Made by a program: the position numbers and the translations under genes. DNA of 64,000 nucleotides, taken from the IMG/VR virus record IMGVR_UViG_3300046323_000587, positions 62,001 through 126,000 of that record. One strand, written 5' to 3'. Of the stretch, positions 26,287 to 54,002 are shown piece by piece; position 1 is the first letter of the stretch, and every line of letters begins with the position of its first letter. The notes beneath the pieces were generated by a model. That model was not told the DNA's origin. It ran no database searches and was given only the letters and a program-made list of their open reading frames with translations.

Positions 26287-26296
26287 ATCACTATTT

Positions 26297-32110: not shown

Positions 32111-32313
32111 ACAAGGAAGTTTTTAATCAAGGGTATATAGTAACGGTAACGAATTAGAAATTTCCTTGTTTATTGTTAACATTTTTAAGAAATATAAAAA
32201 AATAAACTTTATAAAAATATTTTTATAATTTCCTAATTTTTAACAAATTATTTTACAAGGAATTTTTTGATTAAGGGTATTAAGGAACGGTATTAAATCA
32301 AAAAATTCCTTGT
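32111..32313. repeat. Two related long-stem hairpins (32111-32169 and 32255-32313)
   Basis: Stems ACAAGGAA...TTCCTTGT of 17 and 18 bp; both loops contain AAGGGTAT-N5-AACGGTA. Confidence 0.88.
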
Positions 32314-32397
32314 TTTTATTAAATATTTTAACATTACACTAATAAGTTAAACTTTCGATAATATTTTTATTATGGATAAATTAAATGAATGATATAA

Positions 32398-35477: not shown

Positions 35478-38400
35478 CTACTTACTATCAAAAGTATTAA
35501 CAAAAAATCTAGTTAATCCAGTAGTTTTTAAAGCTGTATCTAATGCTTTAGTTCCATCTAAATCAACGAATAATTGTTTTAATATTTTTCCAAAAGTTTC
35601 TATGATAGTAAAGCCTACAATAGGATTATTAGTTGATACAACTGTAAAAGCTGCATTTGCAACAGCTAAATCTTGAAATGATACAGCAACATTTTTATAA
35701 AATTGTTTTTCTATCCCAGTCATCCCTTTTTCTGAACTTTCAAAAGCTCTCATTGTAGTATATCCTAATAAAAACATTAATAAGTCGGCTAATAATCTAA
35801 CTAAATTCTCTTTTCTATCTTCTCTTAAAGTACTCCAATTAAAATTCTTCTCATACATTTGTTTATATACTGCAACAATAGTTTGAAATATTCCTTCCAT
35901 TGTTTTACCTTCCCAATCCATTATTATGTTTACTAAATTACCTTCTGAGTCATAAATTTTCTTTTTTACAAACTTACCTTGCTTAGATTTTGATTGATCA
36001 ATTTGTTGTAACCACCATTTCTCTTTCAATGAAATCATCCAAGTTTTAAATTGTAGTAATAATTTCCCCCAAGCAGTTCTACCTAAAAGAGTTTTCTTGT
36101 CATTAGAATAAGCTCCAAACATTTTATCAGATAAGTTCTTAAAGGTTTCTATTTGTCTTATAGTATAAGGTTGAGAAATTTCTCCCTCAGAGTTCAATGC
36201 TTTTTCTATTCCTACTGTAGCAATTAACTCTTCTTTGATTCTTGAATACAATGCTTTTTGAGATAAATATGCTTCGTATACAGATTTATCAGATTTATTT
36301 GTAGGTGGATTAGCTTGATAAATAGGGTCAAAATATAACTTAAATCTTAAATCTTTTTTTGGATCATACCTTAAATTACCTTCTGAATCTACTGTTACTG
36401 CTGATTTCTCACTAACTCCTCCAACATTTTCTGTTATAATTATCCCATCTTTAATCATTTGTCCTATAAATATAGCTCTTCTATTTACTACATCAGGAAT
36501 TTTATTAAAGTGATACATATACTTACTAGAAAATAAACCTAATTTATTTCCAGTTTGCATCTCAGTTGCTATATTGGTATAATCAATATTAGTTATATTA
36601 AAATAATTATCTAGTCCGTCACAAAAACTAATATTTTTTTCTCTGACCCAATCAGGCAAAGCTTCGTCAAACATAACTACACCGTACCCAGAATATAAAT
36701 CATTTAAAGTAAAATTACCATTTCCTACTGTTTGATTAACAATTGCTTCTATATTGGTATTCCAAATACCCGATAACAAATTTCTTACTGAAAGCATTGG
36801 ATTATAACCAATAAAAATAGTTGATACTGCATCTTTAACAATAGAAAAAGATTTTTCTAGGAAGGGAAGCTCCATAGTTTTATCTTTTTGGTCTAGTACT
36901 CCATTAAGATAAGAATCTAAATAAGCTTCTAAATTTGGTAAAGCTCCAAATGAATTAGCTTTTCTATATAACATCAGTTGTTTAATAGAATCGTACATTA
37001 CCCTTATTTTAAGGAATTCTGCATCTTTATATTGATAAGACGTAAATTGATTTAAAACGTGTTCTAAGTGAGTTTCAAATACTTGACTTCTTTCTAAAAG
37101 TTTCTTACGGCGATCTTCCATATTTGTAATATATGAGTTCATTATGTCATTTTTTCCATAAGAGTTTTTTAATATATTTAATTCTCGTTTAGCATTGACA
37201 ATCTGGCTTTCATAAGGATCAAAAGATACATCTACACTTCCCATTCCTTTACTAGCCTCTCCAATATAGTTGTTTATATTAATAACAGAATCCCACCAAT
37301 TTTTAGTAGCTTCAACAAAAGAAAGATTTTTAAAATAAGTTTTCCAATTATTTTCTAATTTAGAAGAAGTTTTACTAGGAAAAGTTAATGGTATATCAAA
37401 TTTACGAGCTTGTTGTATTGGACTATTAAATAACAAAGTAATTTCTTGTTCTGTGTAATATTGTTGTCTTAATCTTTCTTTAATTGCTTCATCTCTTTCA
37501 AATATAAATTGATTTATAAAAGCTATTTCCTCTGCATTAAGTGGACCTTCTTTTTCTGTATAAGTTTTATTAGGATCTTTTAATTTCATATCTTTTGTAA
37601 TCATATTCTTAAAATAAACAGTAGTAGAACCTAATGTATATTCTTGTAGTTTACCAATATAAGTAAAGTTTTTCTTATATAAATTATTAACAATAGGTGT
37701 CAATCGTTCTCTATAAGTAAGAAAGTTTTTACGGAATACTACTAAAGCTTTATTTATATAATCTATAATATTAGAAATAAGAGTATTATTCATATTAATA
37801 GGGTTGGTAGTTTCAAATTCAATAAAATTAGATTCTAAATCTTTATCCAATGAAATAACCAAACCATTAAGTTGTAGTATAGCATTATCTAAATAATATT
37901 TCTTTTCGTTATCTAGTGTAGTTTCTTTACCAGCTAAACTTTTTCTAATTTCTATAAGATGTTTTAATAACCCTTTTCTAACTTCATTTTGAGTAGGAGT
38001 TTCTTTATATTTATCAAATAATTTTTTGTAATCATCTGTTTCAACTAACTCAATACGATTTTTTGTATTATTTGCATTAAAGCTTGTAACATATTCTGTA
38101 AAGGATTGAACCCAATCTTGTGAATTTATACCAGCTCCCATTGCAGTTTTTAAATCAAAAGTTTTAAGCTCTTCTGATTCACTTGAAGCCAATTTATCTT
38201 TTATTCTTTCTGTTGTAAATACAGTTTTAATTGTAGGTAGTAAGTCCTGTAAAGTAAAAGAAGAAAATTCTTTATTTTGGTATACTATTCTAATTTCACC
38301 AATAGCAGAGGGTTTAACATTATCTGACTTAAAAGTATCTCCAGTTTCTAACATAGCAATCATAGCTGTTTTTATAGCCTCTATATTTCTATATGAAGCT

Positions 38401-40952
38401 TTTAATACATTTGGTGCAAGTTCTTCTGTATCGCCATAAAAATTACCTAATAAAGAAGTTCCTAATTTCATTTCATCTACGATATCATTTGGATTAACAT
38501 TACTTTTTATAGTAGAAATATGAACAAAATCTAAAACATTTGTGTTATTGTGACGAAAAACTAAAATTCCATTTCTACGTAATTCTTCAAAAGAATTATC
38601 TAGTTTCCAAGGATTGTGGTCTCCATCTAAATACTTATTCAAGTTTGTATCTACTTGATCAATATTCCACAATCCTTTAAAAGGTGTTTTTGATAGGCCT
38701 GCCTCTGATTTTATGTGTTCAACATATCTAATAGTTGCATTAATATAATAATTACCATTATCATTATAATCATCAATTAAAAGTTGTGTTATTGCTTTCT
38801 TATCCTCTTCGTGAACTACTGTATCTCCTTTTTTAGTTTTCAATAATATCTTTACTACATTCTTTTCTTTTTCTTTTGTAGACTGTAACCAGAGAGAGTA
38901 ATATCTATTTCCTTTATCATCAACAGCAGAAACATTTTTATCATCTTTTAAAATCTCAATAAAATTTCTATTTCCTATATAAGGTGTAGCTTCATTAACA
39001 ATTGAAGAACCAAATACTTCTTTAAATAGTTGTCCTGTTAAAGAATCTTTTTTAGCTGAGATAGTTTGAGGTTCTTTATCAAATAATTTAGAAATATTCA
39101 CATCTATTTGTCCTCCAGGTGCAATCTTACCTAACCCTGTAAACATACTTCCACGAGTATACTCAACTGATTTTAAATCCTGGTTTTCATAATCAGCTTC
39201 AATTAAAATAGGGATAATATTAACAGAATTAACTTTAAGTTTACCATACCCCTTACTTTCTAAAATATTTTTATAGATGTTTAATTGATATTGTATTTTT
39301 AACTTTTTTTCACTACTCCATTCACCATAAGCTTTCTTACTTGTTTTATAATCATACACATCTAAGTCTCCATTAGCTCGAATTACAATTAAATCTATTG
39401 TACCAGCTATATTAGCATAAGTATCTAGACCTAAATTGATTCCACTAAATACAGAAGCTTCTGTTATAAGAGCGTCTCCTGGCTGTAGTTTTAAATCTAT
39501 ATAGATTTTTCTAGCAACTGACATAAGACTATCAACATATTTCTTTACATCTGATACACTAGAGAGACTACCTAATTCTGGTTTTTTAAAAGGAGCTAAA
39601 GCTAATATTTCTTCGGCTATATTTTCTTTTACAGCATTTAATTGATCTTTTGTTGGCTTACTTGTAAGAGTTTGAATATTTTTATAAGTTATCTCAATAG
39701 CTTTGTGAATTACAGTTCCTAACTCTCTTTCTAATTTCCAATCAAGCATTTGTTGATTCACTTTGTTTTCAGCATCTACTTCACTCATACCTTCTTCTTG
39801 GTATCGTCTTTTCATATCAGTCAATACCTCATTTATATTGAATGACATAGTTCCCCAAGGATTTTCTTTTAATATTTGCTTATTATTTTCTATAAAAGTT
39901 GTAGTACCATAAGTTGTTGTACTTCGGTCATCAGATACAATATATCTACCATCAAAAGTATTTTCATCAGCTTGCTCAATATCAAAAGGACCTTCTACTT
40001 TTCTTCCATTATTATTAATAAGCTCAATAATATCTATTACTTTAGTAGATTCGTCATTAAATAAAATAAAATCTGATTTCAAATCTTTTTGATTAGGTAG
40101 CTGTTTAGTTAAATCTATTACTTTATCAAATAAGCTGTTTGTTTGCGGTATGTTTAATAATTTTTTAAACCAGTTAATTACACGATTAAATAAAGAGATA
40201 TTATCTTGATCAACTATTTTTAAGTAAGATTGTAGTTTAGAATTAGTAAATATCCCAACTAAAAACTCATCAATATTAGTCAAACTATATAATAAATCTT
40301 CACTTTCTGTAATAGGTAAATTAACTATATACTCAGAAATAGTTTTTCTAATAGAATCAAACTCATTTTTAATATTATTTGAAGCTCCATTTAATTTATA
40401 ATGAGAAACCGCATGAACAATCTCGTGAATTACAGCTAAATCTGGGTCTAAACTAGATTTATTAATATAAATTTTATTTTCTTTTGCTGAATAAAAACTT
40501 GAATTTGATTTTAATATTTGAGTTCTATAAGATAGTTCTTTTCCAATCAATTCTTCAGGAGAAAGAAAACTGATTTGAACATTATTTAATTCTTTAAATA
40601 AAGATAGAAATGTACTTAAATCTCGATACTCACTTTTTTCATTTAATTTAAGATATTCTAATGCTGACTTCAATGAAAAATTTGTACCTAATACTTCATT
40701 AATAGTCTTTGGTTTTTGATAAGATATACTTAAAAACTCTCTTTTAGGTTCTCCACTAGAATCTAACTTAGATTTAATTACTTTATTATCAATCCAGTTA
40801 CCAAAACTATTTAAAAATTCTTGTGTATGTATTTCTAAGTAATATTTATAGCCTTGTTCTTTACCAAATTCTTTCTGTAATTGGTTAAACAATATAGAAG
40901 GCTTACCTGACTTGGTTTTTACTGTTATTTCTTTTGGATTTCTACAAAACAT
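35478..40952 (-). CDS. Large polyvalent putative virion/ejection protein: zincin peptidase, PD-(D/E)XK nuclease, helical C-terminus
   Basis: 1824 aa; HEIVH...DEF; GTVIH..IE...IAGTIDL...YDYKT...QLNIY; hydrophobic C-terminal helices. Confidence 0.75.
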   Translation of the reverse strand: MFCRNPKEITVKTKSGKPSILFNQLQKEFGKEQGYKYYLEIHTQEFLNSFGNWIDNKVIKSKLDSSGEPKREFLSISYQKPKTINEVLGTNFSLKSALEYLKLNEKSEYRDLSTFLSLFKELNNVQISFLSPEELIGKELSYRTQILKSNSSFYSAKENKIYINKSSLDPDLAVIHEIVHAVSHYKLNGASNNIKNEFDSIRKTISEYIVNLPITESEDLLYSLTNIDEFLVGIFTNSKLQSYLKIVDQDNISLFNRVINWFKKLLNIPQTNSLFDKVIDLTKQLPNQKDLKSDFILFNDESTKVIDIIELINNNGRKVEGPFDIEQADENTFDGRYIVSDDRSTTTYGTTTFIENNKQILKENPWGTMSFNINEVLTDMKRRYQEEGMSEVDAENKVNQQMLDWKLERELGTVIHKAIEITYKNIQTLTSKPTKDQLNAVKENIAEEILALAPFKKPELGSLSSVSDVKKYVDSLMSVARKIYIDLKLQPGDALITEASVFSGINLGLDTYANIAGTIDLIVIRANGDLDVYDYKTSKKAYGEWSSEKKLKIQYQLNIYKNILESKGYGKLKVNSVNIIPILIEADYENQDLKSVEYTRGSMFTGLGKIAPGGQIDVNISKLFDKEPQTISAKKDSLTGQLFKEVFGSSIVNEATPYIGNRNFIEILKDDKNVSAVDDKGNRYYSLWLQSTKEKEKNVVKILLKTKKGDTVVHEEDKKAITQLLIDDYNDNGNYYINATIRYVEHIKSEAGLSKTPFKGLWNIDQVDTNLNKYLDGDHNPWKLDNSFEELRRNGILVFRHNNTNVLDFVHISTIKSNVNPNDIVDEMKLGTSLLGNFYGDTEELAPNVLKASYRNIEAIKTAMIAMLETGDTFKSDNVKPSAIGEIRIVYQNKEFSSFTLQDLLPTIKTVFTTERIKDKLASSESEELKTFDLKTAMGAGINSQDWVQSFTEYVTSFNANNTKNRIELVETDDYKKLFDKYKETPTQNEVRKGLLKHLIEIRKSLAGKETTLDNEKKYYLDNAILQLNGLVISLDKDLESNFIEFETTNPINMNNTLISNIIDYINKALVVFRKNFLTYRERLTPIVNNLYKKNFTYIGKLQEYTLGSTTVYFKNMITKDMKLKDPNKTYTEKEGPLNAEEIAFINQFIFERDEAIKERLRQQYYTEQEITLLFNSPIQQARKFDIPLTFPSKTSSKLENNWKTYFKNLSFVEATKNWWDSVININNYIGEASKGMGSVDVSFDPYESQIVNAKRELNILKNSYGKNDIMNSYITNMEDRRKKLLERSQVFETHLEHVLNQFTSYQYKDAEFLKIRVMYDSIKQLMLYRKANSFGALPNLEAYLDSYLNGVLDQKDKTMELPFLEKSFSIVKDAVSTIFIGYNPMLSVRNLLSGIWNTNIEAIVNQTVGNGNFTLNDLYSGYGVVMFDEALPDWVREKNISFCDGLDNYFNITNIDYTNIATEMQTGNKLGLFSSKYMYHFNKIPDVVNRRAIFIGQMIKDGIIITENVGGVSEKSAVTVDSEGNLRYDPKKDLRFKLYFDPIYQANPPTNKSDKSVYEAYLSQKALYSRIKEELIATVGIEKALNSEGEISQPYTIRQIETFKNLSDKMFGAYSNDKKTLLGRTAWGKLLLQFKTWMISLKEKWWLQQIDQSKSKQGKFVKKKIYDSEGNLVNIIMDWEGKTMEGIFQTIVAVYKQMYEKNFNWSTLREDRKENLVRLLADLLMFLLGYTTMRAFESSEKGMTGIEKQFYKNVAVSFQDLAVANAAFTVVSTNNPIVGFTIIETFGKILKQLFVDLDGTKALDTALKTTGLTRFFVNTFDSK

Positions 40953-41143: not shown

Positions 41144-42580
41144 CTAACAAGCAACTGATACTTGACCTTGCTGGGAAAGTTGAAAATGGATTTCTGCTAA
41201 ATTTTTTCCTAATAAATTTACTTGATTACGATATTCTTTTTCAGCAGTTAAAGGATTAAGTTTAGTTAAAAATTGTAACAAAGTTTCAGGTTTCTTTTGT
41301 TCTGCATTAATAATTAAAGTAGAAATTCCATTAAAAGGTTTTGTAAAAGTAATTGGTGAAGTATCTAATAAAATTGAATATTCTTTGTTAATGTTTGCAA
41401 CATCTTTTAATGCTTGTGCATAACTATTCTTTAATGTCTTAAATTCACCTTTAATAATTCTAACAGATTTTAATTTCTTTAATTTAGAAATTATTTCTTC
41501 ACTATAATTATTCAATTGTAAAAGAGTTGTTGCAGGTTTTTTTTTATTCTGTGGTAATTTTTTTAATAATTCTTCTATTGGTGAAGATTTACTTAATATT
41601 TTTGTAGGTTTAAATAAATTAAATTCAAATACTTTATTTGTACCAATTACTTTAAAATATTGATTAGTATCTTTTGTAAATATCTCTAATTGAGGATAAT
41701 ATTGAATCAAATCATTTATAACACCACTTCTATAAGAAAAATATTCAGGATTAGTTAATAAAATTGATTCATCTAATAATCTTAATAAATAAGGCAAAAC
41801 ATTAATATTATTTTTGATATCTTGTTTTTCACCTTCTAACGAGTACTTGTTAATCAATAAATCTGTAATAATTTTAGTAGACTCACTCAATTCAATTATT
41901 GTTTTATTGTTTTGTATTAAATGATCTCTATAATCAATAAAAGGTATGTTCAAAGATTCTCTAATTCCATTAAATAATACACCTGATTGATTAGAACGTA
42001 TATTCTTTGATTTTAATAAATCTAATATTGCTTGATGATATGGATTAGCTTTTAATACAACAGAGTTACCTTTTAATAAATTATAATAAAGTTTTCTATT
42101 TAATATTGAAAGTGCCTCAACATCATTTAAGTTAGAATCTTTTTTGAGTTGTTCTAAATCTAATATAACTTCACCAGAGTAATTATTATTAATCCAATTA
42201 TTAAAATCATTTTCATTATTTACACAACAAACAACAAGATTTGGTGTATTTGAACTATTTATTGTAATAGGAAATAAAGAATTTATATGAGGTTCATAAT
42301 TTTCATCTAAATTCAATCCTTCAAGTGATAATTCTAATAGATTTATATCATTACGAAACTTCTTTTTAAATGTATCTTTTTGAGAATTGGATAATTCTTT
42401 ATTAAACTTTAATTTTTGTAATAATTCAAAATTACCTAATTCATTTTGTTTAAAAGAAGAACTTAAATCTAAATAATATTCTAAAGCTTTCTTTTCATCT
42501 TGATTAAAATGAGATAATAAGTCCTTAAATAATAAAGACTTATTACCATTTATTGCTAATATTTCAGAAGTACAATTCAT
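41144..42580 (-). CDS. Putative virion cargo protein; N-domain similar to that of 35478..40952
   Basis: 478 aa; MNC...NGNKSLLF..L...YYL...F...GNF...LDENYEP; ends VAC. Confidence 0.65.
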   Translation of the reverse strand: MNCTSEILAINGNKSLLFKDLLSHFNQDEKKALEYYLDLSSSFKQNELGNFELLQKLKFNKELSNSQKDTFKKKFRNDINLLELSLEGLNLDENYEPHINSLFPITINSSNTPNLVVCCVNNENDFNNWINNNYSGEVILDLEQLKKDSNLNDVEALSILNRKLYYNLLKGNSVVLKANPYHQAILDLLKSKNIRSNQSGVLFNGIRESLNIPFIDYRDHLIQNNKTIIELSESTKIITDLLINKYSLEGEKQDIKNNINVLPYLLRLLDESILLTNPEYFSYRSGVINDLIQYYPQLEIFTKDTNQYFKVIGTNKVFEFNLFKPTKILSKSSPIEELLKKLPQNKKKPATTLLQLNNYSEEIISKLKKLKSVRIIKGEFKTLKNSYAQALKDVANINKEYSILLDTSPITFTKPFNGISTLIINAEQKKPETLLQFLTKLNPLTAEKEYRNQVNLLGKNLAEIHFQLSQQGQVSVAC

Positions 42581-42613: not shown

Positions 42614-45600
42614 TTAAAAACAATTGTTTGTTATTCTATCTAATTCAATTAGTTTCTCCATTGATTTTTCAATAGTTTTTTTATTGAAAGTGTGAATAGG
42701 TTTAGTTTTTAAACTATTTAAGTCTACTTTAATACCAGAATCTCCTATTAAATCTAATAGTGTATATAAATCCATTGATTTAATTGTTTTATTGTTTAGT
42801 TCTAGTTTTGAAATATTTTGTTTAGGAAAAATATAAGAGAAAATTTTTTTAATTTCATCAAAGAATTTATTCACTATTTGATTAAATCTAGTAAAGAAAT
42901 TAGTTTGATTAGAATCTACATAAACTTTTGCTGTATTTTCACCTATTAATGTAGCAAATACTTCCTCTCCTAATAGCTCTGGTGATAAATTTTTATAGTT
43001 TGGTAAAATATCTTTTATAATATCAGTTCTTTCCAAAGATAAATTAATTATTTGTTGATACAATTCAGGATTTTGATTTTTAATTAAGTTTAATAAAATA
43101 TGTGTAATCTCGTGTGCAGGTGTTTCAAGATTTAATTTATTTGTATTAAGATATACAACATTATCATCAACCCAACCGTGCCAATTAACTCTCTCATCAT
43201 TAAATGTTTTTCTAATATAAGATTTATCAACAAATTGAATATCTAAACCAGGAATTAATGGTTGTAGCTTTTCAATGAATTGTTTCATTATATACATTTC
43301 AGTAGAAAAATCAGAAGTACGAGATTGCTTTTGGAATGGTATTTCAAGTGTTCGTAACACGCCTTTTGTATTTTTTGGTATTATTGAATATTCTGAATAA
43401 GTTTTCGAGATAGTTTCAAATTCTATATCCAACTTTCTATCAATCAATATATAAGGAACTTCTGTTGTAAACTCTACATTTAAATCAAAATTTTGATCCA
43501 TAATCTCTATTTCAGGATTAGTTTTAGCTAATTCTATATTTGCTTTTTCTTCTTCTGATAAATTAGTTAAATCAATATTATTTAATATACGAAGTTTTTC
43601 AGCTTGATAATCATCTTCTAAGTCTACTTCTTCCTCTACATTAACATTACTAACAACTTCTTCAATAGGCGTAACTTGTTCAACTACTTTTGGTACCTCA
43701 ATTAATTGCTCTTTTAAAGTTTCTTTTGTACGATTCTCTAGTGTAGATTTAGATTTCATTACTTGTCTAGCAAATTCACCAACCTCAATAAATTCAAATT
43801 GTCCAGTTTTATAAGGGTCTATTCTATTATTTAAAGTAATTAATACTTGTTCTTTTAAATCACTATTTGTAGGTAATAATACTCCTTCTTTTGGTAATAT
43901 TAATTGTCCTCCATACTGTTTAGAAGCTTGTTGAAATTTGTTTATATCTTCTATTGAAGTAAAACTAATTACATTAGGAAACTTACTTTTTTGAGTAGCA
44001 TTACTTATATATAAGTTATTTAAAGCAGAAGATTTTCTTTCAATTTCAAGTTTTGGCTTATTTGAAATAATATATTTATCGTCTAATGAAGTTGATTTAG
44101 GATTAACAGCAATACTATAAAGAGTTGAAGGTAATTGTGACATTAACTTTCCTATTTCTTTTGCAGACCTTCCTGTATTCATATCTTCTTCACTTAATAT
44201 AGGTACATTAGTTTTAATATCATTAGTAGTTTCTTCTATAACAGAATTTGCGTCAAATATATTAATACTTCTTTTATCTAATTCAGAATTAATTTTTTCT
44301 AGCTCAATTTTAGCTTGTTTAAAAGAAGCATTTGAATTAGAAATATTCTTCTTAGACATAACTTCTGAAATATCAGTCAATACAACTAAATGATCAACAG
44401 TTCTACTATAAGCAACATATAGAAGTTTTAATTTTTCAAATAAATTTTTATTAGTTGCAATATTTTTCTCTGAAACAAAGTTGTTTAAATAAGAAGAACC
44501 TTGAGCTGAATGTGCAGTTATGTTATACCCATAAAATGTATCTATGAAATTATAATGTTCTAAAACTTCATAATAAAGTTTACCATTATCAGTCTCATAA
44601 ACAAATTCTATGAAACTATTTACATTTCTTAAATTTTTGTTTACAGGGATTCTGAATATAGCTTTCTCTCCTAATTCAGTTGTAACTTCAAATTCATATA
44701 AAGGCATTGTATCCAAATCAGGTGTCAGATATTTTAATGTTGTAGGAACTTCAACAATTCTAGGAATAGAACTAATAATAACTCTTTGTTCTTTAACTAG
44801 ATTTAAAATAGGTGGCTTATTTGTTATTTCATCTTTTAAAGGATAAAAATCTTTTTGATTTAATATCAACAATTCACCAACATTAAAATCCTCTTTATTT
44901 GCACCAAAGATTCTCTTTCTTATTTCTTTTGTTATTCTAATATTGTTTAAGTGTTTACTATTATTATAACCAATCATAGCAACACTTCTTAGATTAATAT
45001 TTAATTTAATATTTCCTTTACTATCAAATACTTCTTGTTTATATAGTTTTACATAATCCTCAATAAAAGTATTTTCATCTTCTGAGAATAAATAAGTAAT
45101 ATTAGGTGTGTTTTGTTTTTTATTCAATAAAGCAGTTAATTCTTTTCGAACTAATTGTACAGTATCTTCTTGTGGGGAACCATTCACTGTTATTTGCATA
45201 GGTAATTTATACAATAGAATATGATTCAATCTTATTGTAAGAGCCTTAAAAGATTCTGCTGCTTTAAATAAGTCATCATATTTAGCTCTCATATTAATAG
45301 TTAATTCACTATATCTCTTTTCTACATTGTTATCACCAGATAATTTAGATATTTGATATTTATGATAAATTGAATCAATGATTTTATTATCTTGTTTTAT
45401 AGACATTCCCTCAACTTCAATTTCTTTTCCACTAGGTGAAGGTAATTGAGCAAAATCTCCTACAAATAATAGTTTAGGTATCTTATATTTATCATATTTT
45501 TCAGCTAATAAATTTAATCTTTCTTGAATTAAATCAAATAGTTGATTATTAGCTAAACTTAGTTCATCTATAATAATATATTTATATCCAGATAATTTTT

Positions 45601-48600
45601 TATAGAAAGCAGCTTCTCCATAAGTTATATTTTTTAATGTAGATGCTTTACCTTCTTCATAAACTAAACCAAATAAATCGTGAACAGTTACAGCTGGATC
45701 TAAGTTTAATTTAGAATCTCTTGAAACTTTATATTGCTCATTAGCTAAACTTATCTCTCCCACAGCTTTATTAGAAGTTGCATAAATACCTACTGTAGTG
45801 CCAGATATACCTAAAGTAAAGTTTTCTTCATTTGCAAGATTGTCTAATAATCTATTAATTAAATAAGTTTTACCAGTTCCGGCACCACCAGATAAGAACC
45901 AAACATTATTAAGATTGTAGAGATCTTCAATTTTATTAACACTTGAAGGACTTTTAAAGAACTTCTCAATTTCATTTGAAGCATTCTGTTGATCTTTATT
46001 CAAACCATTATTTAATAGTGGTTCTTCAACAACATTTTGAGATTTTTTTAATGCTTGTTCTGTATTATACTTTTTCACTAATAAATTACCTATTTCAGTT
46101 TCAGATAATTGTTTCTCTTGATTCTTAGCTGCCATTTTATCTTTAATAGCTTGAATACGTTCTTGTTTACTTAATACTTGTGAGTAGATTCTATTGAAAG
46201 GTTTAAATGGTGTAGTTACATCTTTTAATGCTGAATATAAATCTTTTAAAGTAGATTTTTCATTTAATATAATAGTTTTATCAGAAGTTGAAGAAACTAA
46301 TTGTGATAACCAATAGAAAAATTCTTTTGATTGTGTAGAGTTTGGATTAGATTGAATTTGTTGTGATAAAGATTCTATTGAGTTTGATTGAGTTGATATA
46401 AATTGTTGAAATTTTTGTATAGTTTCTGGCGAATTAAGAATTGTTACTTGGTTTTCATTTTCTACTATTATTTCATTATTATTTAATAAAAATCCATCAT
46501 ACTCATTAACATTGATATTACTTCTTTTTTCATCATATTCTAAATAAAGTTTTAGTTGTTCTTTATCAAAATATTCTAAACTTTTACTTTGGTTATATGA
46601 TAAGTTTTTAGAATCTAATATGTTTTTAACATTTACAACAACAGGTAAAACTACCATTAAATTTTCAATTTCATCTCCTACTTTTTTATACATATCAGAA
46701 GCAGAAAAATAACCTTGATTTGTAGCTGAATAATCCATAGCTAGTTGGAAATCAATAGAAGTGTGAATTGCTTTAGTTTTACTTTTTGTACCTTTTTTAG
46801 TAGTTTTACTTTTATCAAATTTATCAAATTTTGTATCCGTTCCGTGAAATAACACTTCTTTAACTTTACTATCAGGATAAATACTATTCAAAAATTCTTG
46901 TACCTTACTATCACTAGCAACAGCATAAACAGGTTCAAGTTGTTTTAATTCTTGAATATTACCTCGTTGTTGCTCAGTTAATTCTTCTCTAACTTGACTA
47001 ATACTATCAAATTTATCTTTATCTAAGTAATATAACTTTTGAACAAATCCGTGAGGAATATCTGACAACTTAACATCAGAATGTAACCCTTTATTATATA
47101 TTTCATCAGCTCTATTATTAATAGCAGTTATTAATTCTAATCCTTGTAAGTCACTATTAAGAAATTCTTTTTCAGCTATTTGATAAGATTCTTCTTTTGA
47201 TAATTTTAATACATCTAATTTAGGTGATAATATTAATTCATTATTCTTCAAAGCTGATTTTAAATCAATAGTTCCTTTACCATAAGATACAAATCTAGCT
47301 AAATCTTTAATAGTTGTAAGAGGTGAAATTTCTTTAATATCAATATTTTTCTTTTTAAATATAGCTTTTAAAGCAATTGACATTTCATTAAAGAATCTTT
47401 TAATAGCTGCAATTAATCCTTTATTTTTTTTAAAATCCAACTCTTCTTTAATGTATTTATCAATAGAGTGAGCAATCAATTCGTGTTCAAATTCTATTTT
47501 ATCTGCATTAGAATAATCTTCTTTAATTTTATCTACAAGTGATTTATCTTTAATAGCTTCTGTAACAAGATTACTATATAATTCTGGATTTTGTATTCTA
47601 GCAACTTCAATAAATGGATGTGAAAATGCTTCGTGAACAGTTGAATCAATTGTAGCTTGATTTTCTATTAGATAAGCTGTTTGAGTATCAAAATCAAAGA
47701 ATCCTTTTGAATTAGGTCTAGTAAATTGAGTTTCTGCTTCTTGTTCAGTAATAAATTTAGTTGGAATATTAAAACGAGATTCTAATTCAGTTGTTATTGG
47801 TTGTAGAGAATCTGTAATTACTTCTATCGATTGATTAGAGTTCTTATTTTGTCTATACACTCTTGAAGATTTGCTAGAAGATTCATCAAAAGAAAAATAT
47901 CTAAATCCTTTATTAGTAAATTTATATTTATCTTTTTTAAATGGTATAAAATATATTAAATCATTTAAATCTTTACTTCTACCCATATTAAGCTTTGCTT
48001 CAAAAATTTGTTTCCAGTCTTTCCAATAATTATCAAATATTTCTGGATAATTTCCTTCATCAGTTCTTAAAAAAAAGTCTAGGATATATTGTTTCTTTTT
48101 ACCTGTTTTTGTATCTATTTCAGTAGGGTGTTCTACATATCCTGTAATAGTTATACTTTCAGCATTTTTATGATCTTTTCCAATAAAAGCAGTTGTAAGT
48201 TTCCAACTAGGGAACATATTGCTAATATTACTATACCAAGATTGATTTTTTAAAAAAGGTATTATTTCTTTTAAAAATACTTCTTGACTTCTTGTCTGCA
48301 TTAATTCTAAACCTCTAGTTTTTGCCCAGTATCTAAACTCTTTATGATTTTGTTCTTTTTCGAATTGATTTAAAGTAATTACTCCGTCTATATCGTGTAA
48401 ATCTTCTGATATAGATCTTACTAATCTACCATATTTTCTAATTACTTGTGAACCAGATAATTTATAATCTACAAAAGGGTTATTAAATAAATCAGTAATA
48501 ATTTTTTTTGCAAAAGGATCTTTATCTAATGTTTTTTGATATTCTTTAGGTTCTAGATCACCTCCTTTAAAATCTGAAAATGTGCCGTCTGTATTTTGAA

Positions 48601-49642
48601 AATAGTTTCGTATAAATTTAGTATAATCTTTTTTATACACATCATCAACTATATCTAAGACTATATCTTTTAATTGCGACTCTGTGTAAGTATTTACAGC
48701 AACGTTATCAAATATATTTTCATTAATCCAATTCCAAATCTTAGCATAAATTTTCTTTATCCAATTTTGCTCATATTTGTTTTTATATCCTTTAGATTCA
48801 AAATAAGCCTTATCTAAATCTGGATTTTTACGCTTTTCTCCTATGTATTTATTATTATATCCTTCTAAAATAGCGTCAGAAATAAATTCTATTATAACTT
48901 GTTTATGAGCAAAAACATTAAAAGATTCAGATTGTCCGTACTCAATATCTTCAGATTGTTCTTCATATCCTTTTTTATAATCATAAGTATCATATTTATC
49001 ATAGATCTCTTTATATTTACTCCAAGTTTTAATATTTTTCCATATCTCTATACCTAGAAGAGATTTTTTACCTAAAAAAGTGTAAATAATGTTTGCTGTT
49101 TGTTTAGCTAAAACTTTATCGCCTATATTAGATTTTAAAGCTAAAAATTTTTGTAGTACGTCAAACGCAGCCAAAGTATTTCCAGAATTAAATTCTAAAT
49201 TATTTAATAATTCATCAGCATTTGTATCTACTTCTATATTTAGTCCTTTGATAAAGTCAATTAACTTATTTTCTAATTTACTATCAAATTCTTCTTTTTT
49301 AGAAAGTTCTTTTACTTCATTTGAATTAATAATTTGATTCCACTCTTCTTCACTAGCAATTCTAAAATCAATACTTAAATTACCCAAAGTCTCATAGACA
49401 ATAGGTAATTGAGCAATAGAAAGAAATTTATCAATATCTCCTTCGTATTTATTATAAATATTATAAGCAACATAAACTGCTTTTAATTTATCTGGTTCAA
49501 TAGATAAGATTTTTTTGAATTTATCTTTATCTAACATTAATAAATTAAATTCTTCTTCTGATAATCCTTCTTGATTTTGATTATAAAGAAGTTTATTGAA
49601 ATCTAATTTTACTGATGGATTTTTAAAATTTGGACAAAACAT
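42614..49642 (-). CDS. Large polyvalent protein: nucleotidyltransferase-like, zincin, ADP-ribosyltransferase-like, SF1 helicase, zincin
   Basis: 2342 aa; LSGS...DLHDIDG; HEAFSH; FHGT...FD.FD...YDG...E; GGAGTGKT, IIDE, GDFAQL, TAHSAQGS, YVAYSR; HEITH. Confidence 0.78.
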   Translation of the reverse strand: MFCPNFKNPSVKLDFNKLLYNQNQEGLSEEEFNLLMLDKDKFKKILSIEPDKLKAVYVAYNIYNKYEGDIDKFLSIAQLPIVYETLGNLSIDFRIASEEEWNQIINSNEVKELSKKEEFDSKLENKLIDFIKGLNIEVDTNADELLNNLEFNSGNTLAAFDVLQKFLALKSNIGDKVLAKQTANIIYTFLGKKSLLGIEIWKNIKTWSKYKEIYDKYDTYDYKKGYEEQSEDIEYGQSESFNVFAHKQVIIEFISDAILEGYNNKYIGEKRKNPDLDKAYFESKGYKNKYEQNWIKKIYAKIWNWINENIFDNVAVNTYTESQLKDIVLDIVDDVYKKDYTKFIRNYFQNTDGTFSDFKGGDLEPKEYQKTLDKDPFAKKIITDLFNNPFVDYKLSGSQVIRKYGRLVRSISEDLHDIDGVITLNQFEKEQNHKEFRYWAKTRGLELMQTRSQEVFLKEIIPFLKNQSWYSNISNMFPSWKLTTAFIGKDHKNAESITITGYVEHPTEIDTKTGKKKQYILDFFLRTDEGNYPEIFDNYWKDWKQIFEAKLNMGRSKDLNDLIYFIPFKKDKYKFTNKGFRYFSFDESSSKSSRVYRQNKNSNQSIEVITDSLQPITTELESRFNIPTKFITEQEAETQFTRPNSKGFFDFDTQTAYLIENQATIDSTVHEAFSHPFIEVARIQNPELYSNLVTEAIKDKSLVDKIKEDYSNADKIEFEHELIAHSIDKYIKEELDFKKNKGLIAAIKRFFNEMSIALKAIFKKKNIDIKEISPLTTIKDLARFVSYGKGTIDLKSALKNNELILSPKLDVLKLSKEESYQIAEKEFLNSDLQGLELITAINNRADEIYNKGLHSDVKLSDIPHGFVQKLYYLDKDKFDSISQVREELTEQQRGNIQELKQLEPVYAVASDSKVQEFLNSIYPDSKVKEVLFHGTDTKFDKFDKSKTTKKGTKSKTKAIHTSIDFQLAMDYSATNQGYFSASDMYKKVGDEIENLMVVLPVVVNVKNILDSKNLSYNQSKSLEYFDKEQLKLYLEYDEKRSNINVNEYDGFLLNNNEIIVENENQVTILNSPETIQKFQQFISTQSNSIESLSQQIQSNPNSTQSKEFFYWLSQLVSSTSDKTIILNEKSTLKDLYSALKDVTTPFKPFNRIYSQVLSKQERIQAIKDKMAAKNQEKQLSETEIGNLLVKKYNTEQALKKSQNVVEEPLLNNGLNKDQQNASNEIEKFFKSPSSVNKIEDLYNLNNVWFLSGGAGTGKTYLINRLLDNLANEENFTLGISGTTVGIYATSNKAVGEISLANEQYKVSRDSKLNLDPAVTVHDLFGLVYEEGKASTLKNITYGEAAFYKKLSGYKYIIIDELSLANNQLFDLIQERLNLLAEKYDKYKIPKLLFVGDFAQLPSPSGKEIEVEGMSIKQDNKIIDSIYHKYQISKLSGDNNVEKRYSELTINMRAKYDDLFKAAESFKALTIRLNHILLYKLPMQITVNGSPQEDTVQLVRKELTALLNKKQNTPNITYLFSEDENTFIEDYVKLYKQEVFDSKGNIKLNINLRSVAMIGYNNSKHLNNIRITKEIRKRIFGANKEDFNVGELLILNQKDFYPLKDEITNKPPILNLVKEQRVIISSIPRIVEVPTTLKYLTPDLDTMPLYEFEVTTELGEKAIFRIPVNKNLRNVNSFIEFVYETDNGKLYYEVLEHYNFIDTFYGYNITAHSAQGSSYLNNFVSEKNIATNKNLFEKLKLLYVAYSRTVDHLVVLTDISEVMSKKNISNSNASFKQAKIELEKINSELDKRSINIFDANSVIEETTNDIKTNVPILSEEDMNTGRSAKEIGKLMSQLPSTLYSIAVNPKSTSLDDKYIISNKPKLEIERKSSALNNLYISNATQKSKFPNVISFTSIEDINKFQQASKQYGGQLILPKEGVLLPTNSDLKEQVLITLNNRIDPYKTGQFEFIEVGEFARQVMKSKSTLENRTKETLKEQLIEVPKVVEQVTPIEEVVSNVNVEEEVDLEDDYQAEKLRILNNIDLTNLSEEEKANIELAKTNPEIEIMDQNFDLNVEFTTEVPYILIDRKLDIEFETISKTYSEYSIIPKNTKGVLRTLEIPFQKQSRTSDFSTEMYIMKQFIEKLQPLIPGLDIQFVDKSYIRKTFNDERVNWHGWVDDNVVYLNTNKLNLETPAHEITHILLNLIKNQNPELYQQIINLSLERTDIIKDILPNYKNLSPELLGEEVFATLIGENTAKVYVDSNQTNFFTRFNQIVNKFFDEIKKIFSYIFPKQNISKLELNNKTIKSMDLYTLLDLIGDSGIKVDLNSLKTKPIHTFNKKTIEKSMEKLIELDRITNNCF

Positions 49643-49661
49643 ATATTACTTTGGTTTTATA

Positions 49662-52600
49662 TTATATCATTGGTGGAAACATTCTAACAACTTCACTAGA
49701 AGACTTACTACCTAAACAAACTTCAAAAATATCTTCAGCAAAATCATTCAGCAAAAGTTTATTTTTATTTATATCTGAAATAATATTTTTTGTGTCTTCT
49801 GAGACAGGTTTTTCATTTAGGTTATCCCAAGCTTCAAAATGAGTTTTTAATTTATCTAATAATTCACTATTCAGATTACTCATTTGTAAATCTATTGATA
49901 AATCCTCGTCTATTTGACTTAGATAACTTAAAAAATTTAAATACTCTAAACTTTCTTCTGTTGATACAGGAAAAACTTTTTTCTCAAAATCTGTTGGATC
50001 TTCGTCATCTGAAATATATTCTTTACTATTATTTTTATTTATTTTTTGTTCAGTTAATTTTATTTTATTTGTTATAGATTCAATAGATGTATTTGATTGT
50101 GAAAGGTTTTTATTTTTTTTTAATTTAAAAGTATTTATAATATTAGATAATTGATCTTTACTTAACTCATATAAATTAGGGTTATTTTTTATTATCTTTG
50201 AACTCTCTTCTTTAATATAAGCAATCACACTATTAACTTCTGATTCACTATTTCCAATAACTTCCATAGAATTATCATCATTTAACTCCACACCATCAGC
50301 TATAAACTTCTTATTATCATAAGTAACTTTACTTAAAGTAATTGGTATTCTAGTGATAAACATTCCATTTTGTGAGATAATTGAAGTTGAGAATGAAGAT
50401 ATTTTATTTGAAGTAATAGAGTCTGTTGGTTGATTTTCATTGTATTCAATACTTATAATTTTATTTCCTGTGTGAGATTTATTTCCATATTGTTTTCCGT
50501 CTTTAACTAACCATTCAAATGTATACAAGCCTAATTTAGGAAAATTAGAAAAATCTTCTGTATTTAATATTGCTCCATAACCCAATTGCTTACTTATCAA
50601 TTCTTGAGTATTAATTTGTGAATACAATATGTCCCATTTATCTGCTGTTAGAATTTTAGGTATATTATTATTTTCAATAAATCCGTCTGGTAAAATTAGT
50701 AATATAACATTATTTAAATTTGTGTTCTGTAATTCTGTATTGTTATCAATTCTAGTATATGTACCATCTAAATTTTTATGTAATAGTGTTATTTTAGTAG
50801 GGTGTCCGCCCGATAAATTAGCACTTTGAAAATGGTACATAGCTTTACCTGTTTGTGAGGATTCATTGTAGAATAGCATTATATCTGTGGGATCTTTTAA
50901 CCCTTCCGCAACTCCGTCTACTGTTTTAAATCTTTGATATCTATTATCAGGCAACAAAGTATATATAGAACCTCTTTCTGTAATAAAAGATTTTACTTTT
51001 GGAATTGATTCTGTAATATTTTCAGGTTTTGTTATTGTTTGATTAACTGGTTCAGTTGTAATTGATTTATTATTATTCAATATCTCATCTAATTTCTTTT
51101 TCCAATTAGGTTTTGACATATTGATAGTAGGTATTCTTTTTCTTCTAGCCATTTCAACAGCTTGTCCTGTACCTCCAGCAACTCTTAAAGGATTAGAAGT
51201 TTCTTTAGCATAGAATAAAACAAAATCAACAGGTGTATCTAAATTTTCTCCAAATATTTGATTAGTATTTCTAGCCATAAGTTTTTTAGCTCCTTCTGTT
51301 AATTTATCAGGGGCAGGATGTATTTCTTCCATTACAGTCAATTCTTTTTTACCTACAGGTGCATTTACACCAAATAAATTCTTTTTAGTAGTTCCTAAAG
51401 AAAAAGCTCTATCTGCACCTTCTTCATCTAGTCCAACTTTTCCATTATTTTTCTTAGAAAAAGCTAATCTTTCCTCATATTGTTTTTGATATTTTGGATC
51501 GTTACTTGGTCTAGCAATAAAAGTTTTACCAGTGTTTAACGTATAACCTAAACTTTCTAAATATTTAGCTGCTTCTGTCATTAAATTTAATACATCTTCT
51601 GGGGTTTCTCTACTACCAATTCCTGCATAAGTCATAGTAGGTTTGTCTAATTTTGCAGGTAAAGAATTGAATATAGGTTTATTGCTATTATCCATTTTAA
51701 CTGATTCAGTTGAATTATCTTTATCAGATTGATTTGTAACAGAAGAAGTTTGAGTTGATTGTAGAGGTTGTACAGAATCTAACAATTGCTTTTCATTTAC
51801 ACTGTCTACTTTCTTACCTTGAACCTTTCTAAGTGTCCACACAACTCTGTAATCTTTTGTTTTAACTTTACCATTAAAACCTTTATCAATAGTCAATTCA
51901 GGAAACCCTTTTGGCATATCAAATTTATCTGTTTCTTTATCAAATACAATTTCGTGAAACACATTTCTATTTTCATTTGAAAACACCAGCAAAGCTCCAT
52001 TAGATAAGATAAATTCTTCTCTTTTTTCTATTGAATCTGCTAACACCTGTAATGTATTTTTTCCTGTTTTATCAGAAACTTTAATTCCTTTTGATTCAAG
52101 TAAATCACTGTATTTTATAAGATTACTAGGAGTTAATTGTCCGTAAACTATAGTTTCATTTCCTAATTTATTTTTACTCCTTGATAATTCAGGAGCTAAT
52201 TTATTTGCTATTAGTAAATTAGATATAGTATTTAATCTTATTTCATATTGATTTTTAAATCCAGTACCAAAATTAAAATTGTTTGAGTCTTTTAATTGAT
52301 AAGTAATAAATTTCATAGGTCTTCCTGCTGATATAGTGATGATAGGAGAAGTATTAAATTCAGTGTTATCTTGGTGGATTACAAGACTTCCTTTATCATT
52401 TTTATCGTATACAGAATTATAACTTGCATCATATTCACTGATATCTATACCTCTATTTGCTAATTCAGTTATTATTTCTGTAGGTATATCAGGTAAAGTA
52501 TTTCCATTTTTATCAATTGATGTATATACATATAAAGGAAAATTAGGTATAGACTTAGGGTCTTTACCAGACAATAATTGAGATTTCATTAATTCTGTGA

Positions 52601-54002
52601 TTTCTTGCCCACCTATTTCTTTACCTACTAAAATTCCTTTGTATTGAAGTTTTGTTAAGGTATTAGATCTTATCCATTGATGTCCGTAACCCCAAGACAC
52701 ACTACCACCTGTTTGTTTAAATGAAGTATCTTTAATAAATTCAACATTGTCTTCTACTAATTTAATAGTTGTTTCAAGAGGTATTGCATTTTCAATAATT
52801 ATAAGACCTTTCTCATTCTTGATTAATTTAGGCTTAGATGTTGATTGTAGAGGTTGTGTTTTATTCTCACTTTGATTAAATGGGCTTCTAGGGTCATTGA
52901 TTAAGAAATCCAAAGCAGTTGCGTGTGATGGTTCGTTAGCTTTATTTGCAGTAGTATTAGTGTAATGTAAAGGTTGTCCTTTTAATCTACCACTAAGTAA
53001 TTGTTCCCTAACCCATTCTGCTCTTGGTTCAGTAGAATTGATTATCCAATCTATATATTTAACTACACTTTCTTTTGTAGAAGTAGTTTTAATTAAGTCT
53101 TGTGAGTGTTTCTGATATATAGTTTGTTCACTAGTAAATTTATTGCCAAAGTGTGTATCCTTATTCTTAGCTCTCCAATCATATAACACGTCAATACCAC
53201 CTTGTTGTTTAATAACAGCTTCTCTACCACTATCTTTACCAAATACAGTAGTTTTTACATTTGCCGATTTATTACCTAATAACTTGTAAATATCACTAGC
53301 TTCTTCGTCTTCATTAGTATCTTGTAAATCTTGTTCAGTTTCTTCTATACTTTCTAATATAGCTTCAAATTCATCTAACTTACCAATCTCTTTATAATAA
53401 CTTCCAATTTCTCCTAGTAACTCATCCTTATTCTGACTATATAATTCAATAATATCTGCTTTACTTATACTAATAGCCAATCTAGGATATTTCTTAGTAT
53501 ATTCTAATTTTTTATCTATTCCACTATTAAACTCTGATTTGATACTATTTTGTACTATATTAAATAATTCAGCTTCATTTTTACTTGAATCATTATTAAA
53601 ACCTTCATCTGGAATTATAGTAAAATTATTTTCAAAAATAGAATAAATAAATTCTGGTTTAGTTTTTAAAAATTCTTCTAATATTATTGTATTATTTTTA
53701 TTATTTAATAACTGTTCAAAACTACCTTTAAAATTATTGATAGTTCCAGCTACTTGATAATTAACATCAATAAAATCTATTCCAATAATGCTCTTAATTT
53801 GAGATAAAGTAATTTTTTTTGTTTTATCTATAATTAAAGGGTTTTTATTGGTTGATATAAAATCAAATATAACAGGATTGACGTCTATATGGTTTTTAAT
53901 AGCTTTTTTTATTATAACTTCTTTATCAACTTCTGATGTATTTTCTGGAATATCTATGTCTATCTCTTCTATTCCATTAGGCAATTCAATACAAATTTTC
54001 AT
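49662..54002 (-). CDS. Large polyvalent protein: DUF4326-like, AlkB-like 2OG-Fe(II) dioxygenase, SLOG/DprA-like domains
   Basis: 1446 aa; FGNKF...YIDW...LKG..L...SHA; HQD...H...RVVWTLR; YAGIGSRETP, GADRAF, ARN, GGTGQA. Confidence 0.72.
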   Translation of the reverse strand: MKICIELPNGIEEIDIDIPENTSEVDKEVIIKKAIKNHIDVNPVIFDFISTNKNPLIIDKTKKITLSQIKSIIGIDFIDVNYQVAGTINNFKGSFEQLLNNKNNTIILEEFLKTKPEFIYSIFENNFTIIPDEGFNNDSSKNEAELFNIVQNSIKSEFNSGIDKKLEYTKKYPRLAISISKADIIELYSQNKDELLGEIGSYYKEIGKLDEFEAILESIEETEQDLQDTNEDEEASDIYKLLGNKSANVKTTVFGKDSGREAVIKQQGGIDVLYDWRAKNKDTHFGNKFTSEQTIYQKHSQDLIKTTSTKESVVKYIDWIINSTEPRAEWVREQLLSGRLKGQPLHYTNTTANKANEPSHATALDFLINDPRSPFNQSENKTQPLQSTSKPKLIKNEKGLIIIENAIPLETTIKLVEDNVEFIKDTSFKQTGGSVSWGYGHQWIRSNTLTKLQYKGILVGKEIGGQEITELMKSQLLSGKDPKSIPNFPLYVYTSIDKNGNTLPDIPTEIITELANRGIDISEYDASYNSVYDKNDKGSLVIHQDNTEFNTSPIITISAGRPMKFITYQLKDSNNFNFGTGFKNQYEIRLNTISNLLIANKLAPELSRSKNKLGNETIVYGQLTPSNLIKYSDLLESKGIKVSDKTGKNTLQVLADSIEKREEFILSNGALLVFSNENRNVFHEIVFDKETDKFDMPKGFPELTIDKGFNGKVKTKDYRVVWTLRKVQGKKVDSVNEKQLLDSVQPLQSTQTSSVTNQSDKDNSTESVKMDNSNKPIFNSLPAKLDKPTMTYAGIGSRETPEDVLNLMTEAAKYLESLGYTLNTGKTFIARPSNDPKYQKQYEERLAFSKKNNGKVGLDEEGADRAFSLGTTKKNLFGVNAPVGKKELTVMEEIHPAPDKLTEGAKKLMARNTNQIFGENLDTPVDFVLFYAKETSNPLRVAGGTGQAVEMARRKRIPTINMSKPNWKKKLDEILNNNKSITTEPVNQTITKPENITESIPKVKSFITERGSIYTLLPDNRYQRFKTVDGVAEGLKDPTDIMLFYNESSQTGKAMYHFQSANLSGGHPTKITLLHKNLDGTYTRIDNNTELQNTNLNNVILLILPDGFIENNNIPKILTADKWDILYSQINTQELISKQLGYGAILNTEDFSNFPKLGLYTFEWLVKDGKQYGNKSHTGNKIISIEYNENQPTDSITSNKISSFSTSIISQNGMFITRIPITLSKVTYDNKKFIADGVELNDDNSMEVIGNSESEVNSVIAYIKEESSKIIKNNPNLYELSKDQLSNIINTFKLKKNKNLSQSNTSIESITNKIKLTEQKINKNNSKEYISDDEDPTDFEKKVFPVSTEESLEYLNFLSYLSQIDEDLSIDLQMSNLNSELLDKLKTHFEAWDNLNEKPVSEDTKNIISDINKNKLLLNDFAEDIFEVCLGSKSSSEVVRMFPPMI
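51754..52857 (-). repeat. 18-bp direct repeat (51754-51771 and 52840-52857) flanking the AlkB-like domain
   Basis: gttgattgtagaggttgt occurs twice, 1086 bp apart (in frame), encoding QPLQST. Confidence 0.85.

Follow-up and report, generated by a model that had tools for sequence, protein, structure and literature searches.

Which activities are encoded by a single 7-kb reading frame in a freshwater phage, and at what stage of infection would they be used? This question is raised by a minus-strand gene in a 64,000-nt stretch of DNA (hereafter the window), positions 62,001 to 126,000 of IMG/VR virus record IMGVR_UViG_3300046323_000587. We conclude that its product, P0001, is probably a cargo protein of the polyvalent type, encoded by a crAss-like jumbo phage. 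Residues 354-598 are very probably an active Pol-beta nucleotidyltransferase (NTase), and this NTase is a sequence family without a Pfam model. A preliminary description, made from the sequence letters, had read window positions 42614-49642 as one protein of 2342 aa with a multi-domain, 'polyvalent' architecture. Both statements hold. The region is a single open reading frame (ORF) with an ATG start and no internal stop, and NTase, ADP-ribosyltransferase (ART)-like, SF1B helicase and zincin domains are combined in this one phage ORF. The NTase, HEAFSH, ART, helicase and HEITH motifs listed in that description were all found where it had placed them.

A gap of 19 nt separates the start of the gene from the stop of the 1446-aa gene upstream, and another of 33 nt lies between its end and the start of a 478-aa gene. 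The G+C content of the region is about 25%, at which a random frame meets a stop approximately every 11 codons. Therefore, a 7-kb open frame is not a product of chance (by arithmetic from base composition, the probability of 2342 open codons is ~1e-94). The standard genetic code suffices throughout. Logan contigs from two freshwater-metagenome runs (X1, X2) cover window positions 44300-49700 with no differences, and fragments from a third independent freshwater run (X3) are identical wherever they cover P0001, including the codons for HEAFSH.

The NTase motifs are YKLSGS at residue 393 (LSGS at 395-398), HDIDG at 416 and LDFFLR at 521. An alignment of 37 diverse sequences, reaching 18-23% identity, shows twelve invariant residues (G397, S398, G405, R409, H416, D417, D419, D522, F524, R555, K557 and D558), with P478, K550 and D561 nearly invariant. 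The Pol-beta catalytic pattern hG[GS]...[DE]h[DE]h...h[DE]h is found as G397 S398, D417-I-D419 and D522. In an AlphaFold2 (AF2) model, the DxD strand (417-422) and the strand bearing D522 (516-526) are neighbours, and the GS precedes the helix between them. Structure searches with this model gave matches dominated by NTases, including TglT/MenT3, MenT1, JHP933, ANT(2'') and LnuA. The NTase assignment made in the preliminary description is borne out by the invariant catalytic residues, and the fold matches lean the same way. The scores of the fold matches are all equally middling and therefore do not discriminate between substrates.

The closest resemblance in motifs is to AbiEii/DUF1814 toxins, in which motif I is G[GS], a long spacer containing an Arg leads to the DxD, motif III has Lys/Arg and motif IV is a +DxxD pentad (PMC3985639). 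The P0001 NTase reproduces this set, with GS-x18-DxD enclosing R409, K550...R555, and K557-D558-x-x-D561. Moreover, an AbiEii cluster is among the nearest models in the ESM Atlas (184 residues aligned), and two PADLOC hidden Markov models for AbiEii match 3 of the 37 members weakly (E 0.0024-0.032). We consider it fairly likely that the NTase works like AbiEii/MenT, to which it is probably distantly related. No AbiEi/MenA-type antitoxin family was found among the neighbouring ORFs; the partner is a fused N-domain instead. The AbiEii family was not found in E. coli K-12. When the NTase profile was searched against 1.84 billion representatives, 166 proteins were obtained at E<=1e-3, nearly all of them either 2000-5100 aa long or fragments.

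The N-domain and NTase were modelled together. A word-indexed search returned 27 proteins of 1821-2995 aa that share only residues ~116-600 of P0001 (sometimes to ~780) at 40-61% identity, and the AF2 model of residues 100-800 was built from 24 sequences. Its mean predicted local distance difference test (pLDDT) score is 77, with values of 85-96 over most of 120-580, and structure searches with it resolve three domains. The first (113-347) is predicted to resemble the N-terminal domains of anthrax lethal factor and Certhrax, as well as the small zincins PPEP, PprI and ArdC. It has no HExxH or any other metal motif, and as modelled it is likely a non-catalytic zincin-like domain for docking or recognition. 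Pfam scans found nothing in the N-module of 24 relatives; scans of four relatives at full length returned LysM (weak), ART-PolyVal and PD-(D/E)XK and nothing else.

The setting of the gene carries the cargo reading. The host contig is an IMG/VR virus record of 226,480 bp and 25% G+C from freshwater metagenomes, with a CheckV completeness of 95%. By the sequences of its large terminase (TerL), portal and RNA polymerase (RNAP) motif, the phage is crAss-like; its genome is more than double the size of those of cultured crassviruses. PHROGs recognise TerL and portal on the minus strand, and TerL (genome 191859-193955) is closest to those of crAss-like phages of Bacteroides, Flavobacterium and Cellulophaga (30-34% identity). 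All listed giant ORFs from TerL to the 1824-aa gene (genome 97478) lie on the minus strand. The P0001 gene belongs to a block of six very large genes (3833, 3655, 1446, 2342, 478 and 1824 codons, gaps of 1-191 nt) and lies two genes downstream of a virion-type RNAP (vRNAP), on the same strand as TerL, portal and vRNAP. Giant genes next to a DxDxD virion RNAP, together with a crAss-type TerL and portal, are the marks of a crAss-type cargo block. Residues 1700-2700 of the vRNAP found crAss-like 'putative RNAP catalytic subunit' sequences around DYDID by tblastn (E 3e-10 to 4e-4); a PDB sequence search with the vRNAP segment gave nothing real.

The N-domain and NTase module was found in 40 IMG/VR loci. 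The two are always together, save where a contig end or an upstream stop removes the start of the frame. The NTase forms the conserved core of these proteins. It is followed by a zincin in most relatives, and the ART, helicase and middle segment of P0001 are missing from all of them. In all relatives inspected the NTase gene comes after the vRNAP gene, a protein of >3000 aa with D[FY]DID being encoded directly upstream. Several phages of ~100-120 kb have the module as a separate gene of 574-586 codons. In the two inspected (L046, L036) it lies between the vRNAP gene and a gene for 1855-1934 aa that starts with a zincin-1 homologue, which is a case of gene fission or fusion within the block. 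Conversely, the NTase is fused to vRNAP-homologous sequence in P0077, P0087 and P0157, as is an ART in P0030. Across the 40 loci the module is 41-72% identical, whereas TerL of the five phages tested is only 24-25% identical to that of this phage. A module so well kept against so divergent a TerL points to strong constraint, to exchange between lineages, or to both. The NTase profile is absent from crAss001 and Gundel_1, and a pattern scan (A3) of 185,579 prokaryote species genomes found no NTase relative, an absence that fits virulent phages.

The remaining enzymatic domains of P0001 are not all equally well founded. The preliminary description had proposed two zincins. Its HEITH zincin, here zincin-2, is canonical, with H2177-E-I-T-H2181 (window ~43114) and a downstream GEEVFA (2225), and in this domain alone is HExxH accompanied by a downstream Glu/His ligand. 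Zincin-like fold matches accompany it, and from its motifs it is the best candidate for an active peptidase. A tblastn match (28.7% identity, E 5e-8) links it to part of gp74 of Tenacibaculum phage Gundel_1, a 2482-aa 'structural protein' whose gene adjoins the portal gene; a Pfam scan of the whole of P0001 gave no match to MPTase-PolyVal. Its HEAFSH zincin, here zincin-1, is present at residue 670 (H670-E-A-F-S-H675, window ~47635, 47620-47640), with a downstream Glu in FEHELIA (718). However, the motif is HExxxH rather than the canonical HExxH, and a third, degenerate zincin-like domain, the N-domain, had been overlooked. In the model zincin-1 superposes on the catalytic domain of lethal factor. 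Some of its relatives read HE[FL]SH, whilst others read EExxH or lack the motif, and peptidase activity is predicted with uncertainty.

The core of the ART-like domain has FHGT at 932 and EYDGF at 1047 (YDG at 1048-1050; window 46445-46855). Pfam ART-PolyVal (PF18760) matches 8 of the 12 aligned relatives, with a best E of 8.7e-12, and BLASTP links the segment to the ART-bearing proteins P0002, P0033 and P0034. The match in P0001 itself lies below threshold and appears real, on the strength of the Pfam comparison and transitive homology. The domain has a conserved N-terminal extension (LTEQQR..NIQELKQLEP). Short low-depth contigs in X1 and X2 show ~15 differences over this extension (window 46860-46961) and probably derive from co-occurring related phages sharing that segment.

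The SF1 helicase was correctly called in the preliminary description. Motifs I, II, III, V and VI are intact (GGAGTGKT at 1252, IIIDELS at 1356, GDFAQL at 1395, TAHSAQG at 1709 and VAYSRT at 1743), and the domain matches Pfam AAA_19 (46.6 bits, cut-off 25.1, E 5e-12), PIF1 (38.2 bits, cut-off 25.9, E 1.6e-9) and UvrD_C_2. The Dda-like PHROG 325 matches at 3.4e-32, and tblastn finds DNA helicases of N4-like phages; the helicase alone found nothing at 1e-3 among PDB sequences. A recent duplication of the phage's own Dda (window 32398-33999) was considered as its source and rejected, the similarity being confined to the motifs. The 340 residues that follow (1761-2100) have no Pfam or PHROG match. 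Language-model leads from 1775-2110 to ART-clan families (DarT/PARP, Arr; 0.82-0.86) were too weak to claim a second ART; the stretch may be a highly diverged ART or something quite different.

The coordinates of these domains, and of the neighbouring genes, are collected in the table. Among the neighbours, the 1446-aa protein combines a 2OG-Fe(II)-oxygenase-like segment, whose match to AlkB-type PF13532 is below cut-off, with a DprA-like DNA-protecting domain (PHROG 768, 3.6e-43), an uncommon combination in a putative cargo protein. The 4000-aa P0087 also contains a segment homologous to this protein, beside NTase and vRNAP parts. Relatives of the 1824-aa protein (P0031, P0032) have an ART domain at the N-terminus in place of the zincin, which indicates domain swapping between neighbouring cargo genes. 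The 3655- and 3833-codon genes adjoin, 1 nt apart (genome 116123-138593), and the 3833-codon product has no recognisable family. PHROGs gave no functional annotation for eight large downstream ORFs, which are presumably structural. The plus-strand half of the window holds a T4-like replication set (DNA polymerase, DnaB-like helicase, primase, rIIA/rIIB, exonuclease, ribonucleotide reductase and Dda), in which the T4-like rIIA/rIIB, Dda and ribonucleotide reductase genes lie at window 20304-33999. No known phage was matched when 23.6 kb of the window were searched by megablast.

Table. Domains of P0001, neighbouring genes of the block (window coordinates) and separate frames in other viral contigs.
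Feature	Position	Strand	Description
P0001, whole gene	42614..49642	-	2342 aa, ATG start; same in X1, X2 and fragments of X3
Variable N-terminus, residues 1-112	49307..49642	-	sole relative is another assembly of the same phage (L012, 100% identical)
N-domain, residues 113-347	48602..49306	-	predicted zincin-like fold without HExxH
NTase, residues 354-598	47849..48583	-	predicted Pol-beta fold, AbiEii/MenT (DUF1814) type
Zincin-1, residues 604-790	47273..47833	-	HEAFSH (HExxxH); paralogue of zincin-2
ART-PolyVal-like domain, residues 881-1099 (core 930-1066)	46346..47002	-	sub-threshold PF18760 plus homology
SF1B helicase (Dda/Pif1/RecD-like), residues 1099-1760	44363..46348	-	Pfam, PHROG and motifs
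Linker or domain without family match, residues 1761-2100	43343..44362	-	no Pfam/PHROG match
Zincin-2, residues 2102-2300	42743..43339	-	canonical HEITH
Virion-type RNA polymerase, 3655 aa	54123..64000 (+1090 nt past window end)	-	DYDID at residue 2203
1446-aa neighbour	49662..54002	-	2OG-Fe(II)-oxygenase-like 491-691; DprA-like 789-980
478-aa neighbour	41144..42580	-	no recognisable family
1824-aa neighbour, last of block	35478..40952	-	HEIVH at 176; PD-(D/E)XK nuclease 406-567
Separate N-domain + NTase reading frame	L036-L041, L043, L046, L049 (viral contigs)		~580-650 codons

The phage setting fits delivery with the DNA, given the strand shared with TerL, portal and vRNAP, the nearby vRNAP and the fusions of NTase and ART. 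P0001 would be made late, along with the structural proteins, packed in the capsid together with vRNAP and the block's remaining giant products, and delivered into the host along with the DNA or in advance of it, acting at the start of infection. Each module would there work on its own, possibly after being cut free by the zincin(s) of P0001. The NTase would transfer nucleotides to RNA 3' ends, most likely the acceptor stems of host tRNAs, as MenT toxins do, and so, right at the onset of infection, might shut down or redirect the host's translation or RNA metabolism. ARAGORN found a single tRNA-like gene of undetermined anticodon in the entire genome of 226 kb (genome 213761-213830), and no tRNA in the window. 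With at most one doubtful phage tRNA, host tRNAs are not obviously replaced, which speaks for a selective or transient action if tRNA is the target. The ART-like domain may ADP-ribosylate host proteins, the SF1B helicase may act 5' to 3' on DNA, for instance by stripping proteins off the incoming genome or by unwinding it, and the zincin(s) may free modules or cut host targets. In its most specific form, which we put forward tentatively, the NTase belongs to a phage-restricted AbiEii/MenT-like clade, is an obligatory vRNAP companion together with the pseudo-zincin, and is injected and nucleotidylates the 3' ends of host tRNA or of other RNA seconds after infection begins, the rest of P0001, with ART, helicase and peptidases, being exchangeable payload.

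Several observations weigh against P0001 being an injected set of working enzymes around an AbiEii/MenT-like core. The spacer from GS to DxD is 18 residues compared with 15 in AbiEii, and motifs III and IV are closer together. Pfam AbiEii (PF08843) does not match P0001 (E<=1), 24 relatives (E<=0.1) or the six-frame translation of the genome, ten distant NTase members match no Pfam family at all, and sequence-profile searches of the PDB (A1, A3, A4) gave spurious matches or none. HEAFSH represents a one-residue insertion in the HExxH helix, and its recurrence in three runs shows that the assembly is not at fault. The claim of an ART domain stands only in part: its motifs are in place and resemble PF18760, but the match (930-1066) scores 23.6 bits in the whole protein and 28.2 bits (E 3.6e-6) in the excised segment 870-1110, below the cut-off of 31.2. 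Moreover, the active site of the H-Y-D clade of ART-PolyVal has H in strand 1, Y in strand 2 and D in strand 5 (PMC5512222), and in P0001 H933 and D1049 are present whilst the strand-2 position is H960 rather than Y (alignment A2). The AF2 model made from the 12 sequences of A2 is poor (pLDDT 48), and for this reason the ART fold was not recovered; in the PDB the A2 profile gave only a non-significant touch to Tpt1/KptA at the HGT motif (E 1.1). We infer packaging and injection from context, namely the late operon, the neighbouring vRNAP and the fusions, and no RNA run was among those carrying sequence of this uncultured phage. Domain fusions in polyvalent proteins are promiscuous (PMC5512222), so fusion to vRNAP need not mean a shared pathway. 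Finally, the DNA-metabolism domains of the neighbours (DprA-like, PD-(D/E)XK) would also suit an intracellular role in recombination or repair.

Four other readings were weighed. The NTase could partner vRNAP on phage transcripts, as a poly(A) or tailing RNA 3'-end polymerase rather than a weapon against tRNA. The order and fusion of the NTase and vRNAP genes agree with this, and poxvirus virions, by analogy, hold a poly(A) polymerase beside their RNAP. The language-model neighbours of the NTase are poly(A)-polymerase-like and aminoglycoside-NTase families, with PF19244 (Poly_A_pol_cat) in 18 of 30. BFVD returned a phiNV3 'Poly A polymerase head domain' (template modelling score 0.41 by target), and TUT1, GLD-2, URT1 and the CCA-adding enzyme are among the fold matches. 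However, the motif IV pentad, the motif II Arg, the PADLOC matches and the Atlas cluster favour AbiEii/MenT, and the vRNAP of crAss001 works without an NTase, so far as the profile finds none there. We regard transcript tailing as rather unlikely.

Equally unlikely is a role for the NTase in NMPylating proteins, or in using up or modifying signalling nucleotides. This would be an anti-defence activity, like that of MNT antitoxins which AMPylate HEPN toxins, or a counter to cyclic-nucleotide immunity. Protein NMPylation was proposed for the NTases of polyvalent proteins in the 2017 survey (PMC5512222), CD-NTases and cGAS-like enzymes are among the fold matches, the small-molecule adenylyltransferases ANT(2'') and LnuA match at near-full coverage, and MenT-family toxins are reported to self-modify too. 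These fold matches, however, share the even scores that do not tell substrates apart, and no sequence relation to MNT or CD-NTase families was found.

We think it improbable that P0001 stays unpackaged, as an intracellular late factor for replication, recombination or anti-restriction, the block being a DNA-processing module beside the structural genes. The helicase, PD-(D/E)XK nuclease and DprA-like domain are DNA-metabolism functions, and the block abuts the replication module of the opposite strand. Yet the gene shares its strand and short gaps with vRNAP downstream of TerL and portal, NTase and ART are fused to vRNAP in other phages, and zincin and ART domains typify polyvalent proteins that are delivered (PMC5512222). 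Moreover, the BFVD structural neighbours are annotated structural proteins of crAss-like and flavobacterial phages. It is very improbable that, apart from the helicase, the enzymatic domains have decayed to relics in a mainly structural or ejection scaffold: the insertion in zincin-1 and the EExxH or motif-less state of its relatives, the missing metal motif of the N-domain, and the sub-threshold ART with its replaced Y would agree, but the NTase is the most conserved part of the family, with catalytic residues invariant in 37 sequences to ~20% identity, and zincin-2 and all helicase motifs are intact.

The preferred reading, a polyvalent cargo protein, places P0001 close to systems already described. 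Polyvalent proteins were surveyed by Iyer, Burroughs, Anand, de Souza and Aravind in 2017 (PMC5512222). The phage-type members, such as that of Roseovarius Plymouth podovirus 1 in which virion RNAP is joined to MPTase and ART, are like P0001 giant chains of unrelated enzymes. They have zincin-like and ART-PolyVal-type domains, to which the HEITH zincin and the sub-threshold ART of P0001 are the candidate counterparts; they share with it helicases, a late or structural gene neighbourhood and an association with virion RNAP, and P0001 has at least two unrelated domains in one large phage polypeptide. The overall architecture is thus already known. The NTase, in contrast, was rightly singled out in the preliminary description as the least expected part. 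In the survey Pol-beta NTases occur solely in the polyvalent proteins that conjugative elements encode, those of Firmicutes, and are minimal, NTox45-related and fused to ArdC-N (PMC5512222), whereas that of P0001 is AbiEii/MenT-like, paired with a motif-less zincin-like domain, encoded by a crAss-like phage and the core of its family.

The gp45-gp50 proteins of crAss001 (Bayfield et al. 2023, PMC10172136) resemble the block in being encoded by giant genes by vRNAP, with crAss-type TerL and portal. They were detected in virions by mass spectrometry and are expressed late (PMC10172136; PMC10136315), and are thought to be ejected partly unfolded (PMC10172136). However, there is no sequence similarity (the NTase profile finds nothing), and published descriptions present those proteins as associated with RNAP or forming channels rather than as bearing NTase, ART, helicase or peptidase domains (PMC10172136, PMC10136315). 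The crAss literature consulted on the cargo/transcription block, these two papers included, contains no mention of NTase, ART or metallopeptidase domains. The block described here is also far larger, at ~13,600 aa in six genes.

With AbiEii, MenT1-4 and TglT (DUF1814, PF08843) the NTase has in common all four motif types, the fold matches to TglT, MenT1 and JHP933, the Atlas cluster and the weak PADLOC matches. It differs in leaving the Pfam model unmatched, in its spacings and in having no recognised antitoxin; those toxins are bacterial proteins of ~200-350 aa, whereas the P0001 NTase sits within a phage giant protein with an obligatory N-terminal partner domain. Phage T4 Alt and the phage N4 virion RNAP with its ejection proteins are functional analogues, as head-carried enzymes delivered with the DNA to seize control of host transcription (PMC5512222; PMC13434306). 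Alt is a single-domain ART of the R-S-E clade, the N4 vRNAP is T7-like, and neither has an NTase. The likeness of the N-domain, as modelled, to the N-terminal zincin-like folds of anthrax lethal factor and Certhrax, which lack a working metal site, is one of shape and not of membership, with no sequence relation and no common function indicated.

Taken together, what is new here is the NTase family, its fixed partnership with a pseudo-zincin and with the gene for vRNAP, and its presence in a crAss-like phage from fresh water with a genome of 226 kb. To our knowledge, no part of crAss-like phages is less well understood than the cargo proteins, most of which have no known activity. P0001 gives a gene of the cargo block a testable set of enzymatic activities. 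The NTase marks the block, tracking vRNAP across very divergent phages, and its family, at ~166 representatives, is small enough for characterisation. The concept of polyvalent proteins would extend to crAss-like phages and to an NTase type unreported for phage-type polyvalent proteins. If the NTase acts like MenT/AbiEii, a toxin fold used by bacteria against phages would have been turned by a phage against its host.

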